This document shows, piece after piece, positions 46,694 to 61,592 of a DNA stretch of 64,000 nucleotides. Position numbers and translations under genes: made by a program. Location: IMG/VR virus record IMGVR_UViG_3300028131_000823, positions 1-64,000 of that record. One strand, written 5' to 3'. Under the pieces are notes generated by a model, which was given only the letters and a program-made list of their open reading frames with translations, was not told the DNA's origin and ran no database searches. How positions within the stretch are numbered: the stretch's first letter is position 1; each line of letters opens with the position of its first letter.

Positions 46694-47062
46694 ATGAAAA
46701 CATTTATAGAATATTTAGAAGAAAACAGAGTTACTGAAAAGGAAATGCAACTTTTAACAGAAGGACTTCAACAAGAATGGACTCCTGAACTAGAAGAAAA
46801 AGTAGATAAAGCAGTTGATGAATTTTTAAACGAATACAGAGATAAAAATGGAGACTTAGATGTTGATAGATTTAATAATGAAATGACTAATGAAGGTCTT
46901 TTAGGTTCCATTGTAGGTGGTCTTGCTGGATTTGCTTTAGGAAAATCTATTGGAAAAATGGTAGCTAAAGTATTAGGTGTACAAAAAGGTATTCTATATG
47001 ATTTATTAACTTCACGACTCGTTGGAACTGCAATCGGAGCTTCAATCGGTAAAAGGTTTTAA
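46694..47062 (+). CDS. CTS-bearing protein with C-terminal glycine-zipper membrane segment
   Basis: MKTFIEYLEE; GLLGSIVGGLAGFALG...LVGTAIGASIG; GATATATAA at 46682. Confidence 0.7.
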   Translation: MKTFIEYLEENRVTEKEMQLLTEGLQQEWTPELEEKVDKAVDEFLNEYRDKNGDLDVDRFNNEMTNEGLLGSIVGGLAGFALGKSIGKMVAKVLGVQKGILYDLLTSRLVGTAIGASIGKRF

Positions 47063-53009: not shown

Positions 53010-54275
53010 ATGTTATTAACTTACGAACAATTTCTAGTCGAAAAGGCTCAGATAGTAGAGGGTAATTTGATTTTAGAAGGAGGAGCTGCAGGCCACATGC
53101 CTCATCCCTTTGACTATAATGATTTAACTTTCCAAGATTTTAAAACCATTGTTACAAATTCATTACAAGGTGAAATACATTTTGAAGAAGGACCTACTGA
53201 AAAAACAGATGGTCAAAACTTCTTTGTTACAGTAAAGGATGGTCAAGTTCTTTTCTCAAGAAACAAAGGGCAACTAATGGCACCTGTATCTTTAGATGGA
53301 GTTATTAAAATGTTCACGGGCCATGCATCAAAACTAGTAGAAGATACTTTTATCTATGCTGCAACAGATTTAGAAGCTGCATTATTAAGTTTAAGCGATC
53401 ACCAAGAATTTAACAATGGACAAAACTTTCTTAATATGGAGTTAATTTATTCTAAGAACCCTAATGTGATTAATTATGACAGAGATGTTATTCAATTTCA
53501 CGGCATGGCAGAAACTGATGGCAAAGGTAATATAGTTAACATGTCACAGCAAACAGGTGCAAAACTTGCAAGACTTCTTAAAGGTATAGAGGCAGATGTA
53601 CAAAAGACATTTACAATTATTCCTCCACAAATACTTAAACTTCAGAAAAACATAGATTTTGAAAAGAGACAAAGTTATTATCACAGTAAATTAAATGACT
53701 TAAGAGATGAGTTTAATTTATCAGACGGTGACGAAGTTAAAATGTATCATGAAGCATGGTGGAGAAGAGAAATTGAAAAAGATTTTGCAGATATTTCAAG
53801 TGATTTAAAAGAAGGTTTATTTTTAAGATGGGCATACAATGACAAGCAAACTATGAATATGGTTGCTATGAAAAAGATTGCTACTCCCGAACAAATGAAA
53901 AAAATCAAAGAGTTTGATAAGATAAAAGGTAAAAAGTATAAGCAGAATATTTTACCATTTGAAAACTTATTTTTAGAGTTAGGAAAAGATGTATTATTAA
54001 ATGCAAGTAATTTTGTTGCTGCAAATCCTGATTTAGAAAAGAAAAACTTACATGCTAAAATTAGAAAGGCAGCAGCTGACGTTAAACTTAACGGTGACTT
54101 AAAGCAAGTTGCTAAAATCGAAGCTGAATTAGAAAGATTAGAAAGTATTGGAGGTATCGAAGGTATTGTACCAACTGAGGGAATAGTCTTTAAATATAAA
54201 GGTAAGATTATGAAACTTACCGGCACATTTGCTGCAATTAATCAGCTTATGGGCATCATAAAATACGGAAGATAA
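53010..54275 (+). CDS. Ligase-superfamily nucleotidyltransferase-like protein with CTS-like N-terminus
   Basis: MLLTYEQFLVE, ILE^GGAAGH; motif I TEKTDG, SRNK, motif III LNMEL, motif IV EGIVF, motif V KIMKLTG. Confidence 0.6.
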   Translation: MLLTYEQFLVEKAQIVEGNLILEGGAAGHMPHPFDYNDLTFQDFKTIVTNSLQGEIHFEEGPTEKTDGQNFFVTVKDGQVLFSRNKGQLMAPVSLDGVIKMFTGHASKLVEDTFIYAATDLEAALLSLSDHQEFNNGQNFLNMELIYSKNPNVINYDRDVIQFHGMAETDGKGNIVNMSQQTGAKLARLLKGIEADVQKTFTIIPPQILKLQKNIDFEKRQSYYHSKLNDLRDEFNLSDGDEVKMYHEAWWRREIEKDFADISSDLKEGLFLRWAYNDKQTMNMVAMKKIATPEQMKKIKEFDKIKGKKYKQNILPFENLFLELGKDVLLNASNFVAANPDLEKKNLHAKIRKAAADVKLNGDLKQVAKIEAELERLESIGGIEGIVPTEGIVFKYKGKIMKLTGTFAAINQLMGIIKYGR

Positions 54276-54282
54276 ATATACT

Positions 54283-56241
54283 ATGATAATTAATTATAAT
54301 CAATTTATTTTAGAAAACGAAGATAAGGAATATGAGAAGTTAGATGCGAAAGCAGGTGACATGTCAAAAAAGTTAACCGATAAGGAGAGAGCACGTTATA
54401 AAGAATTAAGTAAAAAACATTTCCCAATAGTTATTAAAAAATTACCTGGAGATGTTTATGAAATTAAGACAGTAGGTTTAGGATATACAGGCCCACAAGG
54501 AGATGTGTTAGCAGAATATTATAGAGAAGAAATTTTAGCAAAGGTAAAAAATCCAAAAGGTATTCACATGGATATTAGAAGAAATGATGGAGGACAACAG
54601 GCTCCAGCTAAGGCAATATTGGATTTTTTTGTAGATACACCTAAAGACGAAGATGGAAATAGAAAAATTCCATTAGAACAACAAAGTAATTATTGGCCAA
54701 CTGATGAATGGACAGATGAAGATAGAGAAAGAGGTTATCAATCGAAGACTAATTATTTAGAAAGTAAAATAGAAGATAAGAATAAATTTACAAATATACC
54801 TACAGTGGTTTCCACAAGTGATTGGACATTTTCAGGAGGTGAATTCTTAACTGACACTATAAAAAACTTTGGCAAAGACAACATTACACACGTTGGCTCT
54901 AATTCAGGAGGAGGAGCAAATAGAACGTCACATACTGCCGACGACATGGCATCAACTTGGCCAGATGAAGATCCAAATGCTGAAGGATTATCAGTTGATG
55001 AAAAGTTAGAAAGATCAATGAAAGTATTTGAAAAGTTTTATGTAGATAAAGAAAAAGCCAAAGAATGTAGAGAAGCAGTTATGAAAGATCCTAGTAAATA
55101 TATTAAGGATGGAAAAATAAACGATAAAACAGTTCAAGACAAAATGCGTGAAATTACAAAAGATTTTCATGTAGCATATTTTACAAGAGAAGATGGAAAA
55201 ATTGAAGTAGCGACGCCTTATGGAAAATCTGATAGGATAGTAACTGATAAAGATGGTAAGCCATTTGGACCTCCTTATGAATTTAAAGGAAATTGGGAAG
55301 GAACAGGAACAGGAAATGCAGTACCAGGAATAGGAATTACAGAAACAGATCCAGATACTGCTAAAAACAGCGCATTAGAATTACTATATACAAAGACTGG
55401 TCAGAAAGATCAGCTTGAAAAAATGAAATCAAATCCAAAAGAATTTGGTCTTACTAAAGACGGCAAAGATGATTGGTATAAAAGAGGTACACTTGCAGAT
55501 AGAGAAGCAGGTAGAGAACATAATTACCCAGGATATGCAGCTGAAGGAAAACACCCTGAAATGTGGAAAGCTAGCCAAAAGGCAGCAAGTAAAAATATGA
55601 AAAACTGGAAAAGCATTCTTAAAAAAGCAGAGTCTAATAAAAATATAGATGATAAATCTAAACCAGAGCCTGAAAATTGGTGGGAAGAATACAGTGATGA
55701 AGCAAAGGCCAAATATATTAAAAAACACGGAGAGGCTCCAGACGTCGGTAATAAAGTAAAACCAACTAATGAAAATAAAAGAAATATTATGAAAAAGGTT
55801 AAACTATTTGAAGAATTCTTAAATGAATCAACAATGAATAATTTTAAACCCGAGGTATTGTCTAATAGAGATAAAGTAGATATGAAGCTTTTTAAAAGTT
55901 TAATGCCTAGAACTGCTAAAACGGTTAAAGACGCTGATCGTAGAATTCAAACATGGAAGGGTAATAAAATGTTTGTACATTATCAAGCATTTACAGTTCA
56001 ACCAAATGGTAATAAACCAGATTTACCAACATATAAGTTCCATAATTCACAATATTGGTTAAACGATACTCAATTAGGTTGGGCAGGTAGAGCAGGTGAA
56101 AAGGTAAACATCACTTTATTAACAATAACTGATGTAACTGATCCTGATAATGAAAAAATGTTAGGAGAACTTTATGTTAATACCGATACATATTTACAAG
56201 AACACAATATAGTATTTAACGAGTTAAAGAAAATATCATAA
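54283..56241 (+). CDS. CTS-bearing polyprotein-like ORF with S41 (tail-specific/C-terminal) peptidase domain
   Basis: MIINYNQFILE; HMDIRRNDGG resembles DLRxNxGG; VVSTSDWTFSGGE resembles TxSAAE; HVGSNSGGG resembles VGExTxG; NWEGTG; second CTS MKKVKLFEEFLNE at 55789. Confidence 0.65.
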   Translation: MIINYNQFILENEDKEYEKLDAKAGDMSKKLTDKERARYKELSKKHFPIVIKKLPGDVYEIKTVGLGYTGPQGDVLAEYYREEILAKVKNPKGIHMDIRRNDGGQQAPAKAILDFFVDTPKDEDGNRKIPLEQQSNYWPTDEWTDEDRERGYQSKTNYLESKIEDKNKFTNIPTVVSTSDWTFSGGEFLTDTIKNFGKDNITHVGSNSGGGANRTSHTADDMASTWPDEDPNAEGLSVDEKLERSMKVFEKFYVDKEKAKECREAVMKDPSKYIKDGKINDKTVQDKMREITKDFHVAYFTREDGKIEVATPYGKSDRIVTDKDGKPFGPPYEFKGNWEGTGTGNAVPGIGITETDPDTAKNSALELLYTKTGQKDQLEKMKSNPKEFGLTKDGKDDWYKRGTLADREAGREHNYPGYAAEGKHPEMWKASQKAASKNMKNWKSILKKAESNKNIDDKSKPEPENWWEEYSDEAKAKYIKKHGEAPDVGNKVKPTNENKRNIMKKVKLFEEFLNESTMNNFKPEVLSNRDKVDMKLFKSLMPRTAKTVKDADRRIQTWKGNKMFVHYQAFTVQPNGNKPDLPTYKFHNSQYWLNDTQLGWAGRAGEKVNITLLTITDVTDPDNEKMLGELYVNTDTYLQEHNIVFNELKKIS

Positions 56242-56252
56242 AATTATAAGAA

Positions 56253-58091
56253 ATGGCATTACAGGATTTAAGAACATATTATGAGTCAGTTGAAAAAGAG
56301 GATTTTAATAATCTCTTAGCACAGAAATGTTTAGTTACTGAAAAGATTCAAGCAAGTAGTCTTCATGTAAGAAGAGAAGATAGACTCTTAGAATTTTATA
56401 AATCAGGTAATAAGCAGGCTCTTAATAAAATAGATAGAACAATTGTTTCTTACTATGAAAAAGGTATAGGCCATTTTAAAGCATTATTAGACGAGACTAT
56501 TCAACAGATGCCAAGTGATTGGAAATTTGGATTTGATTATATGGTTAGTGAAAAGACAGTAGACATTGAATATGATACACTTCCAAAAAATAGTCTTATA
56601 TTAACACATATTCAAGTATTAAATGAAGACAGAACCCAGATTAAAAAAGTAATTAGAGATCCTAAGATTTTAGAAAAATGGGCTAATCTTTTAGAAGTTC
56701 AATCGCCTGAGGTTGTTTATGAAGGCATCCTTTCAGATCACCAAAAGGAAAAGTTAGTTAATATACTGAGCTTACAAGGAGAGCAAGCAAAAATAGAATT
56801 ACAAGATTTTGGTTTTTCTTATAGAGCATTTACAACATTTAACGAGTCAATTCATAAGTCAATGTTAAACAATGATATTCATAAAGACATTGATGGATTA
56901 GTTGTAAGTTTTGTAGAGGGCAAATCATTAAAGAACTTTAAACTACAGAGTCCATTAAAAGAAATTAAAGAACAAGAAGAAAGAAAGAGTTCGGATGCGT
57001 ATCAAATTACCGTAGTAAAACTTATTGAATATTTTAATGCGTTTGATTTTAGTGAAATACAACTTGAAAGTAAAGAAGTTGATGAGAGATATTTAGAATT
57101 AATGACAGCAGGTTTTAATTCATTTATAAAAGATAATGGAGCAAGCTTTATTGGCATGAATTTTGATAGCGCAGAGTTTGCAAACAATGAAGCATTTGAT
57201 TTAAATCCAAAAATGATAACAAATCAAGAAACTATTAGGCTTGTTAATGAATCAAGAGAAGTCGCAGAATTATTAAAAATAACATTAGGTACTTTTAGAA
57301 AGAAGAGACAGAAAGAAAATGGAGTTTTAGCAGGAGATGCATTTAATAGTTTAAACGGTATTATAGAAAAGATTGAAGCAAGAATTTACGAAAAAGTAGA
57401 GGAAGATAGTGTAATGGATTTTAAAACATTTAAAATTAACGATACACTTAAGGGACAAACAAATCCAATTAACGAAGGTTTAAAAGTAAACCATCCTGAA
57501 AGAGGAGCTAAAGAAGTTAATATGTTTGTTGGTAGGTTTCAGCCATTCACATTAGGACATGTTAAAGTCGTTGAACATTTGCATAAACAAAATGGACTTC
57601 CAACTGTTATATTTTTAGTTAAAGCTAAAAAGAAAAAGAAAGAAGACAGTTTTAAAAGACCATTTGATGAAACAATGCAGGTAAATATGATAAAACAGGT
57701 GATGAAGGAATATCCTATTGAGACAGTGTATGTTATAGATACCGCAGCAATTGACAAAATGTTTAATGCTATGAGACCTAAGTATGAACCTGTATTATGG
57801 GGAACAGGTAGTGATAGAATGAAAACATATGGCTATCAAGTTAATAACCCAAAATATAGAGGAGAATTAGGAGTTGAAGATAGCTTCAGATTAGAAGAAA
57901 TTCCAAGGACAGACGATAACATTAGTGCAACAAAGGTAAGAAACGCTTTATTAGATGGAGACGAAAAGACATATAAGTCCATGACTCCAAAATCTATGCA
58001 CAAAATGTATAAATTATTAAAACAAACAATGGAAGAAAGTGTTGAACTACAAGAACAAGTTTTAACATTTTCAGAATTTAAAAGCAAATAA
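56253..58091 (+). CDS. Fusion: RNA-ligase-like domain + TxGH nucleotidyltransferase (NMNAT/PPAT/cytidylyltransferase family)
   Basis: VTEKIQAS (degenerate motif I), DIDGLVVSF, NFKL; VGRFQPFTLGH, GTGSDR, ISATKVR; C-terminal VLTFSEFK. Confidence 0.75.
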   Translation: MALQDLRTYYESVEKEDFNNLLAQKCLVTEKIQASSLHVRREDRLLEFYKSGNKQALNKIDRTIVSYYEKGIGHFKALLDETIQQMPSDWKFGFDYMVSEKTVDIEYDTLPKNSLILTHIQVLNEDRTQIKKVIRDPKILEKWANLLEVQSPEVVYEGILSDHQKEKLVNILSLQGEQAKIELQDFGFSYRAFTTFNESIHKSMLNNDIHKDIDGLVVSFVEGKSLKNFKLQSPLKEIKEQEERKSSDAYQITVVKLIEYFNAFDFSEIQLESKEVDERYLELMTAGFNSFIKDNGASFIGMNFDSAEFANNEAFDLNPKMITNQETIRLVNESREVAELLKITLGTFRKKRQKENGVLAGDAFNSLNGIIEKIEARIYEKVEEDSVMDFKTFKINDTLKGQTNPINEGLKVNHPERGAKEVNMFVGRFQPFTLGHVKVVEHLHKQNGLPTVIFLVKAKKKKKEDSFKRPFDETMQVNMIKQVMKEYPIETVYVIDTAAIDKMFNAMRPKYEPVLWGTGSDRMKTYGYQVNNPKYRGELGVEDSFRLEEIPRTDDNISATKVRNALLDGDEKTYKSMTPKSMHKMYKLLKQTMEESVELQEQVLTFSEFKSK

Positions 58092-59138: not shown

Positions 59139-61592
59139 ATGGCAACATTCGAAGAATTTTTAAACGAAAGAAATATAACTCTTAAAAGAAGATATACTGA
59201 ATCACACCCTTCCCAAACTGTAGGCAATTCAGCTAGAGTTAGAAATGCAATTATCGAAGCATTAAAGGATGGCAAAATAACAGTTGAAGAATTTAATAAT
59301 ATAGTTAGTCAACACTCTTCTGCTCCATCAAAATGGACAAGAGGTAATAAAAGATTTTTCAAAATAGAAGAAGATGGCGTAAGTCTTTCTAAATATGGAA
59401 CAAAAATATTAAATAGCTTAGTTACTGAATCTATAGATGAAGGTTTAAATAAGTCAGATGTTACATATCAATTAGCAATAGATTATACAGGTAGAACTAA
59501 GCCGAAAATTACTAAACTTAATAAGAAAAGACTTGAAATTAAGTACGGTTATAAAATTAGCCCAGAAACGGTAATTGATTCTATCAAGAAGGTTCATCCA
59601 GAAGTAGAACTTAAACATGTTGAATGGTCAGATAAAATGTCAGGTGGAGGTTTTCACATATTTGATATTTTAGAATCTGCAGTTACTGAAGGAACATATG
59701 ACTCAAAAGATCATATAGGATCTACATCAGATGGACAAGGTTCTAATGCTGAGATTTATAAAAAAGGTAGAGGATATTATGTAGTTGTTAGTGGAGAGTA
59801 TGATTATGACTTCGAGGCTAAGAATGACAAAGAACTAATAAATAAGTTAGAAGAATATGAATTTGATTCTTCTGATATTTTAGAATCAGCGATTAATAAT
59901 ATAGAAGAAAATATGATACATAATAATTTTAATGAATTCATTAATAAATCAATTAATGAAAATAACGTACAGGATTTAGATATGGAAGATATGAATCCTA
60001 AAATGGCTAAGCAGCTATTAAACATGGCTAGTAAACAATATAAAAACGAATTTCAAGGATCTTATACTGTAGATAAAGGAAATAAAAAAATGAGGTTTGA
60101 TACTTATAGTGCTTTATTAGCTATGGTAAAGCAAAAAGATTCTGGACCTTATGGTCCTTCATATGGTATTAATATTGGAGGAAATAATGAATTAGAAGAT
60201 TTTGAAGGTAATGTTTTAGGTAAGCTAAATGATAAATCATTATCAAGTGCAATTAGTAGTGTTGCAGCTGCTATGAAAATGGCAGCTAAAAACAGTAATG
60301 AATCAGTAGTTACTGAAGCCAGAGTAAGTGCAAAAAAGTTATTAAAATCAGTTGTAAATGGAGAAAGTAACTCAGTTGAAGGTATTAAACTTTCTAAAGA
60401 AATGGCCCAATCATTTTTAGAGTGGCTAGATCAATCAAGTTATGGTAGAAAATTTAGCGATCTTCCATTTGATAAATTATTTAGTGCAGCATTTAATTGG
60501 GGTATTGAAAGATATGCTAAAGACAATAAACTGAAAAATGAATTAAAAGATTTAAAAACAAAGGCAAAAACAATGAAAGAATCAAAAATATACGAAAGTT
60601 TCAGTGAATTTGTTAATGAATCTTTAGAACTTAATGAAGCATTAAAGAGTTCTAAACTTAGAGGACTTCTTACTATGAAAAGAGGTAGTAAGGCAATTTT
60701 AAAAGCAATTTATGGCTTTAGTAAAATAGAATTAGACAAAATAACAGATGATCAAATAATAGATATTGATCCTAAATTAGGTAAAAAAGCAGAAGGTTTA
60801 GTTGTTTATTATACAACTCAAGAAAAAGACAACCCTTATGCTGATACTTCAAAATCTACATATAATTCTGCTGGTAAAATTCCAGCAAATACAATACTTG
60901 CATTAGGTATGGGAAAAGACGTTGCATATGTTAAAAGAGATTATATTAAGAGAAAAATGACAATGTCTTTAACTACAGATCCTAGAAAATCATCTTATGA
61001 TATTGGAATTAATAAAGAGTATAGAGGCTGGGACGCATCCGGTATTTATAATGTAAAAAGAGTAATTGATGTTGCAGACGCTGCATTTGTAATTAATACT
61101 AACGCTCTTCCAAATACTAAAGGAAAAATTGAAGACAGAGTAAAAGCTAAAGAAGGTGCATTAGCATTTAAATCTGATAAGGAATTTAAAGATGCAAACA
61201 TAGCAAGATATAGAGAAATTCTACAAAAGAGAGCAAGTGAATTACCAATAGATAAATTAGTAGAAGATGCAATTGATGATGCAACTAAGGTTATGAAAGA
61301 TGGTTTAAAAAATCAAGAAAAAAATAAGTACGGAGAACTTATTGCAGGTGTAGGAAAGGACGGTAGAGCTTATAAATTAAATGACATTAGTAATTTTATA
61401 AATGGTTTAATTTCAGACTATGAAAGATGGTCAGGTTATATGGCAACAATTGAAGAGGCTGAAGCTAAATATGGTAAAGATTCTAGAGAATTTGAATGGG
61501 AAGCTAGATATTCTCAAAAAGAATCTGAGGAATACGCAAAGAGAATTAAAGATAAATTAGCTAAACTTAAGAAAAGAAACTTAGCTTGGTAA
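59139..61592 (+). CDS. 817 aa CTS-bearing polyprotein-like internal protein
   Basis: MATFEEFLNE; internal HNNFNEFINK and ESFSEFVNE; repeated IDE^G, VTE^G, VTE^A, LNE^A sites; GATATATAA at 59102. Confidence 0.65.
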   Translation: MATFEEFLNERNITLKRRYTESHPSQTVGNSARVRNAIIEALKDGKITVEEFNNIVSQHSSAPSKWTRGNKRFFKIEEDGVSLSKYGTKILNSLVTESIDEGLNKSDVTYQLAIDYTGRTKPKITKLNKKRLEIKYGYKISPETVIDSIKKVHPEVELKHVEWSDKMSGGGFHIFDILESAVTEGTYDSKDHIGSTSDGQGSNAEIYKKGRGYYVVVSGEYDYDFEAKNDKELINKLEEYEFDSSDILESAINNIEENMIHNNFNEFINKSINENNVQDLDMEDMNPKMAKQLLNMASKQYKNEFQGSYTVDKGNKKMRFDTYSALLAMVKQKDSGPYGPSYGINIGGNNELEDFEGNVLGKLNDKSLSSAISSVAAAMKMAAKNSNESVVTEARVSAKKLLKSVVNGESNSVEGIKLSKEMAQSFLEWLDQSSYGRKFSDLPFDKLFSAAFNWGIERYAKDNKLKNELKDLKTKAKTMKESKIYESFSEFVNESLELNEALKSSKLRGLLTMKRGSKAILKAIYGFSKIELDKITDDQIIDIDPKLGKKAEGLVVYYTTQEKDNPYADTSKSTYNSAGKIPANTILALGMGKDVAYVKRDYIKRKMTMSLTTDPRKSSYDIGINKEYRGWDASGIYNVKRVIDVADAAFVINTNALPNTKGKIEDRVKAKEGALAFKSDKEFKDANIARYREILQKRASELPIDKLVEDAIDDATKVMKDGLKNQEKNKYGELIAGVGKDGRAYKLNDISNFINGLISDYERWSGYMATIEEAEAKYGKDSREFEWEARYSQKESEEYAKRIKDKLAKLKKRNLAW

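Follow-up and report, generated by a model that had tools for sequence, protein, structure and literature searches.

Introduction

Two described systems are close to the gene reported here. The first is the His-type branch of the S41 peptidases (IRBP-like proteins, NSR, CPAF and tricorn), as opposed to the Ser/Lys branch of Prc and the Ctp enzymes. In NSR of Streptococcus agalactiae, His98 closes an N-terminal bundle and pairs with Ser236 of the TASSAEM motif; the His is oriented by Thr263 and Asn265, and ~14% of the activity is left after the substitution H98A or S236A (PMC4698656). The second is the capsid cargo of phage T4. Its capsid-targeting sequence (CTS) consists of the first 10 residues of IPIII, residues 4 and 7 being used for targeting and residues 8 and 10 for processing, and the prohead protease gp21 cleaves after L/I-X-E (PMC9026906; the T4 CTS and its cleavage are also described in PMC3012670 and PMC7697877). 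T4 Alt is processed at both ends (PMC9026906). The present analysis concerns an open reading frame (ORF) of 652 amino acids (aa) on a DNA stretch of 64,000 nucleotides (nt), hereafter the window, i.e., the first 64 kb of a 204,977-bp IMG/VR virus record (IMGVR_UViG_3300028131_000823, genome G000). This ORF encodes: (i) an S41 domain of His type in which the bundle that bears the His follows the core instead of preceding it; (ii) two CTS-like tags, one N-terminal and one internal; (iii) a second compact domain, called module 2.

The reading preferred here, to which a rough probability of 0.55 is given, is that the ORF encodes a two-part capsid cargo: the His-type S41 peptidase with its transposed bundle and module 2, each with its own CTS-type tag, would be cut apart in the prohead and ejected, and the S41 enzyme would then cleave a host target. 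Fold, family branch, domain order and residue conservation are solid at the level of sequence and model. The functional account (activity, packaging and target) is plausible.

S41 motifs, family and fold

A previous examination of the letters alone (hereafter the sequence-only reading) had proposed a tagged S41 protease at positions 54283-55500. This span covers the first two thirds of the 652-aa ORF, which it cuts. Four S41-type motifs had been listed, i.e., DIRRNDGG, VVSTSDWTFSGGE, HVGSNSGGG and WEGTG. All of them are present in a single frame of the + strand and in the order listed, which is the S41 order (positions in Table 1), and the motif residues are invariant across the family down to ~31% identity.

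The Pfam family PF03572 matches the 652-aa protein (P0001) over residues 84-211, with an E-value of 8.6e-5 and 22.6 bits for a cut-off of 24 bits. The threshold is passed by three homologs, P0005 (41.3 bits), P0006 (35.3) and P0007 (34.4), which match P0001 at E 1e-61 to about 1e-35. The motifs are thus more than a chance resemblance, since PF03572 scores and the motif residues are invariant across a diverged family. This family is very small. A profile search of 1.84 billion representatives gave 5 full-length members and 2 fragments, and a word-indexed search gave 6 further sequences with 31-85% identity. A search of the PDB with the single protein sequence gave no match, and NCBIfam and PHROGs gave no meaningful match for either module.

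Residues 1-500 were modelled with AlphaFold2 from a 13-row family alignment. The model has a predicted template-modelling score (pTM) of 0.75 and a predicted local distance difference test (pLDDT) of 85-95 in the core. It was compared by VIA-align with 48,161 PDB representative chains. Ranks 1-15 are all S41 chains (Z from 14.9 to 8.8), followed by the crotonases as the next class (Z ≤8.6). The values are 14.9 for both IRBP and NSR (4y68), 14.3 for CtpA, 13.8 for BACUNI_00178 and CtpB, 10.6 for CPAF and 8.8 for tricorn, and the alignments to S41 chains extend to model residues 369-378. With Foldseek, the top 50 are all S41 chains, with a probability of 1.0, and the structural matches include Prc, CtpA and CtpB. 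The model therefore superposes on S41 peptidases, as the sequence-only reading expected, and residues ~45-400 form, in the model, an S41-fold domain.

In the PDB, the family profile finds its best sequence matches in IRBP and in two Bacteroidales S41 proteins (8vcb and 4l8k), which have TGGGS at the place of the Lys. A deep search gave ~290 more distant matches, i.e., proteins of 300-500 aa. The five distant relatives that were checked contain PF11918 (Peptidase_S41_N of IRBP) and then PF03572, and a profile of 40 distant relatives matches the IRBP modules at E 1e-67. The bacterial IRBP-like S41 proteins (PF11918 plus PF03572) and the eukaryotic IRBP/RBP3 modules are thus closest in sequence to the phage protein, with which they share the motifs DxH, DLRxNGGG, TFSaGE, GETTGGGA and NWEGTGV. 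The relatives of this group are cellular and have a length of 300-470 aa.

Predicted catalytic residues

All family members that span the respective positions, including those with as little as ~31% identity, retain S184, H296, E339, S/T208 and the DxRxNxGG loop. S184 lies in TFSGGE, at the nucleophile position where the sequence-only reading had placed it, and is invariant in the family. Together with D97, R99, N101, G103 and G104, it is aligned with identical residues in the 45 sampled relatives. In the same manner, GSNSGGGA (205-212) and GNWEGTG (336-342) align with the relatives' consensus G-x-x-T/S-G-G-G-A and N-W-E-G-x-G. D294 and H296 align with the D-x-H of 45 of 45 relative pieces in alignments A3 and A4 and of 65 of 65 in alignment A5. 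These three alignments contain the family alignments plus relatives cut into pieces. They served for column checks only, where motifs aligned cleanly, and were kept out of the folding: MAFFT misplaced the tail pieces in A3-A5 and, in A5, the Ser/GGG part. The D-x-H of the N-domain and the Ser of TFSaGE never vary among the cellular relatives, which also have GETTGGGA and an almost invariant NWEGxG.

HVGSNSGGG had been read as the VGExTxG motif of S41 peptidases. It does align with VGExTxGKG, but the alignment places an invariant Gly (G211) where the catalytic Lys is expected. None of the 45 sampled relatives has a Lys here; the residue is Gly, Ser or Ala. The Ser-to-Lys spacing of Ctp enzymes is 25 (S300/K325 of H. 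pylori CtpA, title of 9ku3), and counting the same distance in the relatives leads to a Gly. Another candidate for the general base, K315, was discarded because it is Arg in P0012.

A classical tail-specific (C-terminal processing) protease of the Prc/CtpA type, i.e., an enzyme with a Ser/Lys dyad that recognises the C-termini of its substrates, was the label given by the sequence-only reading. Prc, CtpA and CtpB belong to the same Pfam family and share with the phage protein both the S41 fold and the nucleophile motif. Their Ser/Lys dyad, PDZ domain and periplasmic export are, however, absent here. No PDZ family is detected at E ≤1 in Pfam, and the model shows no PDZ-like insert when aligned to Ctp chains. 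By inspection, as had already been remarked, there is no signal peptide: the N-terminus (MIINYNQFILENEDKEYEK), including its first residues MIINYNQFILE, is charged and has neither a hydrophobic core nor a hydrophobic stretch. With the Lys of TxGKG replaced by an invariant Gly and with IRBP-like and NSR-like proteins of His type as nearest relatives, the Prc/CtpA label is extremely improbable. On the basis of its motifs and nearest relatives, the protein belongs to the His-type S41 branch (IRBP-like/NSR/CPAF/tricorn) and not to the Ser/Lys Prc/Ctp branch.

It is likely that the catalytic apparatus comprises S184 as nucleophile, the DIRRNDGG loop, H296 as general base, and S208 and E339 as the residues that orient the His, with Gly in place of Lys. 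The Ser-His geometry of the phage protein would follow that of its homologs. NSR (PDB 4Y68; Ser236/His98 dyad) is, with IRBP, the joint best structural match. It shares with the phage protein a bundle that ends in the catalytic His, a T-x-S-x-x-E motif, the absence of both catalytic Lys and PDZ, and a His-orienting Thr/Ser in the following loop. It differs in three respects: (i) its bundle is N-terminal, whereas it is inserted after GGG here; (ii) it is a membrane-anchored bacterial resistance enzyme, whereas the phage protein is tagged and unanchored; (iii) the identity is ~15%. CPAF of Chlamydia and tricorn have the same fold. The Ser-His-Glu triad of CPAF is formed by His105, Ser499 and Glu558 (PMC8787135), and CPAF is a delivered effector protease. 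Both are non-viral and much larger than the phage protein; their accessory domains are different and their domain order is normal.

The protein could also be a non-catalytic S41 homolog, i.e., a pseudo-protease like IRBP which would bind a ligand, a peptide or DNA within the head or the host. Both by sequence and by structure the protein matches IRBP modules best, the active-site loops are poorly modelled and the rearranged topology described below could have broken the active site. The conservation of S184, H296, E339, S/T208 and the DxRxNxGG loop in all covering members is nevertheless the pattern of an active enzyme rather than of an IRBP-like pseudo-enzyme, and one IRBP module aligned to the family profile has a residue other than Ser at the S184 position. 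A pseudo-protease is thus quite unlikely, and the peptidase activity of the protein is considered likely.

Relocated His-bearing bundle

The order of the domains is core, bundle and tail in the phage protein, the bundle being located between the GGG and NWEGTG motifs. In the IRBP-like proteins the order is N-domain, core and tail: the N-domain precedes the core in 102 of the 102 cellular relatives with a detectable N-domain and follows it in none. The family profile matches the ordinary relatives in three separate stretches, and the stretch located after the Ser motif maps to the relatives' N-termini. When the alignments were cut into three parts and compared by hhalign in a 3x3 matrix, the permuted diagonal gave 97.9%, 99.5% and 79%, and all six off-diagonal values were ≤1%. 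It should be noted that Pfam detects no PF11918 in P0001 directly; the homology of the bundle comes from this comparison of profiles.

No remnant of an N-domain or S41 segment was found in the N- or C-terminal extensions of the family. As read from these profile alignments, the rearrangement is not a simple circular permutation: the bundle is in effect transposed into a loop of the core. If confirmed, this rare non-cyclic rearrangement, with the Ser/His/Glu set kept, would be a natural experiment on how the active site of His-type S41 enzymes is assembled.

Table 1. Features of the 652-aa ORF, with positions in the window
Feature	Positions	Strand	Basis
Whole ORF, 652 aa plus stop: tag 1, S41-like module, tag 2, module 2	54283..56241	+	ORF list, translation
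Cassette, 1,506 nt (502 codons), stop-less: tag 1 and S41 body	54283..55788	+	Missing from close relative L006 (blastn)
N-terminal tag MIINYNQFILE, residues 1-11, CTS-like (Y5, F8, I9, E11); predicted cleavage after E11	54283..54315	+	Pattern [FY]xx[FY][ILVM]xE
S41 catalytic core, first part (residues ~45-213): strands, DIRRNDGG, TFSGGE (S184), GSNSGGGAN with G211 at the Lys position	54415..54921	+	hhalign to relatives' core 99.5%, E 2e-22; Pfam residues 84-211
Motif DIRRNDGG, residues 97-104	54571-54594	+	
Motif VVSTSDWTFSGGE, residues 175-187	54805-54843	+	
Motif HVGSNSGGG, residues 203-211	54889-54915	+	
Relocated helical bundle (residues 214-312), homologous to PF11918 Peptidase_S41_N, ends in invariant D294-F-H296	54922..55218	+	hhalign to relatives' N-domain 97.9%, E 3.9e-13
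S41 core, last part (residues ~313-400): KSDR 315-318, GNWEGTG 336-342 with E339, then helices	55219..55482	+	hhalign to relatives' tail 79%, E 1.5e-5; NWEGTG aligned to NWEGTGV
Motif WEGTG, residues 338-342	55294-55308	+	
Charged low-confidence linker, residues ~401-502	55483..55788	+	AlphaFold2 pLDDT mostly <50 after residue 408; no S41 segment match
Internal in-frame tag MKKVKLFEEFLNE, residues 503-515; predicted cleavage after E515; native start codon of module-2 gene	55789..55827	+	Most stand-alone homologs start with the same or a near-identical tag
Module 2, residues 516-652: compact alpha+beta domain	55828..56238	+	46 homolog clusters; AlphaFold2 pLDDT 88.4, pTM 0.82

Cassette, second tag and module 2

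The close relative L006 aligns with the window by blastn in two pieces: positions 1-765 of L006 correspond to 53525-54289 (93.9%) and positions 754-1129 to 55784-56159 (90.7%). L006 contains a homolog of the upstream gene and then, directly, the module-2 gene. Given these breakpoints, the window has a 1,506-nt insertion that extends from the ATG at 54283 to the base before the internal ATG at 55789. Two other contigs, L003 and L002, share with the window just 54301-55775 and 54316-55830, respectively, in other neighbourhoods. In L003 the S41 body is followed by a degenerate tag and then by a stop. In L002 (7001-9757, protein P0004) the same internal tag links it to a Zeta_toxin/AAA_33 kinase-like module. 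The breakpoints of the cassette are solid at the DNA level and coincide exactly with the tags; from these alignments, the S41 body is shuffled among related phages as a cassette that lacks a stop codon and has tags at its boundaries.

The gene directly upstream (53010-54275) is a 421-aa tagged ORF (MLLTYEQFLVE) with no family match and 94% DNA identity in L006; it is the fixed left flank of the cassette site. Genes for glycosyltransferases and methyltransferases lie on the L002 contig as well.

Homologs of residues 503-652 form 46 clusters in marine metagenomes. Most of these are stand-alone proteins of 150-160 aa, and 34 of the 46 carry the tag pattern near the N-terminus. The module-2 gene of L006 and the 156-aa forms start at the internal tag. 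The leader MEDKYIM is common to the natural 156-aa (module 2 alone) and 658-aa (S41 plus module 2) forms. Since the exact 652-aa protein is found on 43 independent contigs and both natural forms exist, the fusion cannot be ascribed to an assembly artefact. Module 2 itself has no significant match in the PDB (Foldseek), AFDB clusters, ESM Atlas (features and shape), Pfam or PHROGs.

CTS-like tags and prohead protease

The N-terminus had been described as CTS-like by the sequence-only reading, and this is borne out: Y5, F8, I9 and E11 correspond to positions 4, 7, 8 and 10 of the T4 CTS, shifted by one residue. Of the 243 ORFs of the genome, 13 have the pattern [FY]xx[FY][ILVM]xE in their first 20 aa, for ~0.9 expected from its internal frequency (15 matches in 57,946 residues), i.e., a ~15-fold enrichment. 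In the S41 family, the strict N-terminal tag is kept in 9 of 11 full-length members, and the following 40-130 residues are highly variable. Six more distant members carry the strict tag within 10-20 residues of the C-terminus.

The genome also encodes a prohead protease of gp21 type (S77), with 44.8 bits for PF03420 (cut-off 27) at G000 85723-86073 and an E-value of 1.9e-38 for phrog_207. The small ORF directly upstream of this protease carries the tag. By analogy with T4, we infer that the S41 protein is packaged and cleaved.

The ORF of the prohead protease is located outside the window (G000 85645-87543, i.e., L001:1423-3318). It encodes 632 aa with PF03420 and phrog_207 and has, beyond the protease domain, five spaced tag-like [FY]xx[FY][ILV]AE motifs at residues ~218-368. 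It resembles a protease with an attached scaffold-like part in which sites for cleavage or targeting are repeated.

The N-terminal motif may have another meaning. The S41 protein could be an intracellular phage enzyme which is never packaged, the motif being a translation or regulatory leader or the scar of the recombination that moves the cassettes. That the tags fall exactly on the cassette breakpoints, that the tag-coding DNA is 60-75% identical between genes and that the locus lies beside replication genes would all fit such an enzyme. A scar or leader does not agree as well with a motif that is conserved as protein while the codons vary, and that fits both the four T4 CTS positions with a mapped function and the L/I-X-E cleavage rule (PMC9026906). 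Moreover, the matching protease is encoded with a tagged small ORF just upstream of it, and the repetition of the tag near the C-terminus in six members is reminiscent of T4 Alt with its processing at both ends. This alternative is therefore rather unlikely.

The tag could have a more general role, as a universal joint. In this extension of the cargo reading, which concerns phages of this marine lineage, stop-less cassettes bounded by tags would recombine at these tags into polyproteins that the prohead protease cuts in the head, and one of them would be an active, rearranged S41 enzyme injected against a defence or envelope protein of the host, the first such phage effector. Three in-frame fusions are behind this proposal, i.e., S41 plus module 2, S41 plus the zeta-toxin-like kinase, and a two-module 817-aa neighbour (see below). 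It is put forward tentatively. If confirmed, the tag breakpoints and the recurrent in-frame fusions would suggest a simple modular grammar for the exchange and co-delivery of capsid cargo.

Proposed role

The genome has ~30% G+C, and its + strand carries nearly all genes. The source is a marine jumbo phage. Its UvsW-like helicase is 56% identical to that of LR756500, an uncultured 462-kb «huge phage», and 34-38% identical to those of other megaphages, of the T4-like marine phage Melnitz and of Tenacibaculum phage PTm1. Genes of this genome have A-rich leaders without Shine-Dalgarno sequences. The motif (T)GATATATAA is found at ≤60 nt upstream of 46 of the 232 + strand genes, including head genes, i.e., 7.6-fold over background. 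It is probably a late-promoter element of this phage lineage.

The two-part cargo reading can be detailed as follows: (i) the polyprotein would be made late; (ii) it would be recruited to the prohead core through its tag or tags; (iii) the gp21-type prohead protease would cut after ILE11 and LNE515; (iv) the predicted products would be an S41 enzyme of ~57 kDa (residues 12-515) and a protein of 137 aa (residues 516-652); (v) both mature proteins would be ejected with the DNA; (vi) the S41 enzyme would cleave a protein of the host, which would belong either to its defences or to the envelope/periplasm. We infer the substrate as well as the catalytic activity, the packaging, the cleavage and the ejection.

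Several points weigh against this account. Concerning the enzyme, P0001 itself falls 1.4 bits below the PF03572 cut-off, the pLDDT is <50 in the active-site loops 208-212 and 330-350 of the AlphaFold2 model, and IRBP, a close structural relative, is itself not a peptidase. Concerning the delivery, the role of the tag is based on an analogy with T4, which is only a distant relative, the helicase being <60% identical to that of any phage record. Concerning the expression, the region upstream of the S41 ORF contains just a variant of the enriched GATATATAA motif, which bears on late expression, and the A-rich leader of M503 resembles the leaders of other genes, making internal initiation at M503 possible.

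The sequence-only reading had left the choice between the maturation of head cargo and an action on the host. An enzyme that trims or matures other prohead cargo would be well placed, since such a protease would be co-packaged with many tagged proteins. It is, however, very unlikely that this is the role of the S41 protein: (i) a 91-94% identical phage lacks the cassette and forms of 156 aa only are common, i.e., the S41 body is dispensable; (ii) a dedicated T4-type S77 prohead protease is encoded; (iii) the S41 family occurs in just a handful of lineages. The presence or absence of the cassette between near-identical phages points to an accessory function of arms-race type rather than to a maturation enzyme, in agreement with the cleavage of a host target proposed in the two-part cargo reading.

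The internal proteins of T4-type phages are anti-restriction factors. T4 internal proteins and Alt likewise carry an N-terminal tag of ~10 aa with the same four key positions, a gp21-family protease is encoded in both genomes, and the cargo genes of T4 and of this phage are both diverse, dispensable and shuffled. The differences are that T4 has no S41 protease cargo and that two tagged modules are fused here in one stop-less ORF, in a phage that is distantly related.

The remark of the sequence-only reading that an S41 domain is unusual for a phage is upheld by the searches. The protein has no tblastn match in 50,697 phage GenBank records, and PHROGs contains no S41 family, even with ordinary S41 relatives as query. 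In BFVD the S41-type matches that bear a name belong to giant eukaryotic viruses (among the top six, two are unnamed), and the phage entries are ClpP/SppA. In the literature nothing relevant was found on phage-encoded S41 enzymes. An S41 peptidase as capsid cargo of a tailed phage is thus undescribed and, if confirmed, an injected S41 protease would add a new class of first-strike effector.

Neighbouring genes

Seven of the 13 N-terminally tagged ORFs of the genome are located between positions 46694 and 63782 of the window (starts at 46694, 53010, 54283, 59139, 62558, 62997 and 63327), and this region is a putative cargo island. The cluster adjoins replication genes, i.e., those of SSB (48058), a primase (48968) and the UvsW-like helicase (50709).

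The ORF at 59139-61592 encodes 817 aa, with the N-terminal tag MATFEEFLNE and a second in-frame tag, YESFSEFVNE, near residue 488. It has no Pfam or NCBIfam match and appears to be another two-module cargo fusion. The ORF at 56253-58091 encodes 612 aa, with an uncharacterised N-terminal part of 400 aa and a C-terminal domain similar to nicotinamide mononucleotide (NMN) adenylyltransferases/cytidylyltransferases (PF01467, phrog_3041). It ends in a partial tag-like sequence, LTFSEFKSK.

On the contig of P0005, the distant S41-family gene is directly preceded by a gene encoding a 340-aa protein of PF00144 (beta-lactamase/penicillin-binding protein family), which may hint at an action of the cargo on the cell envelope.

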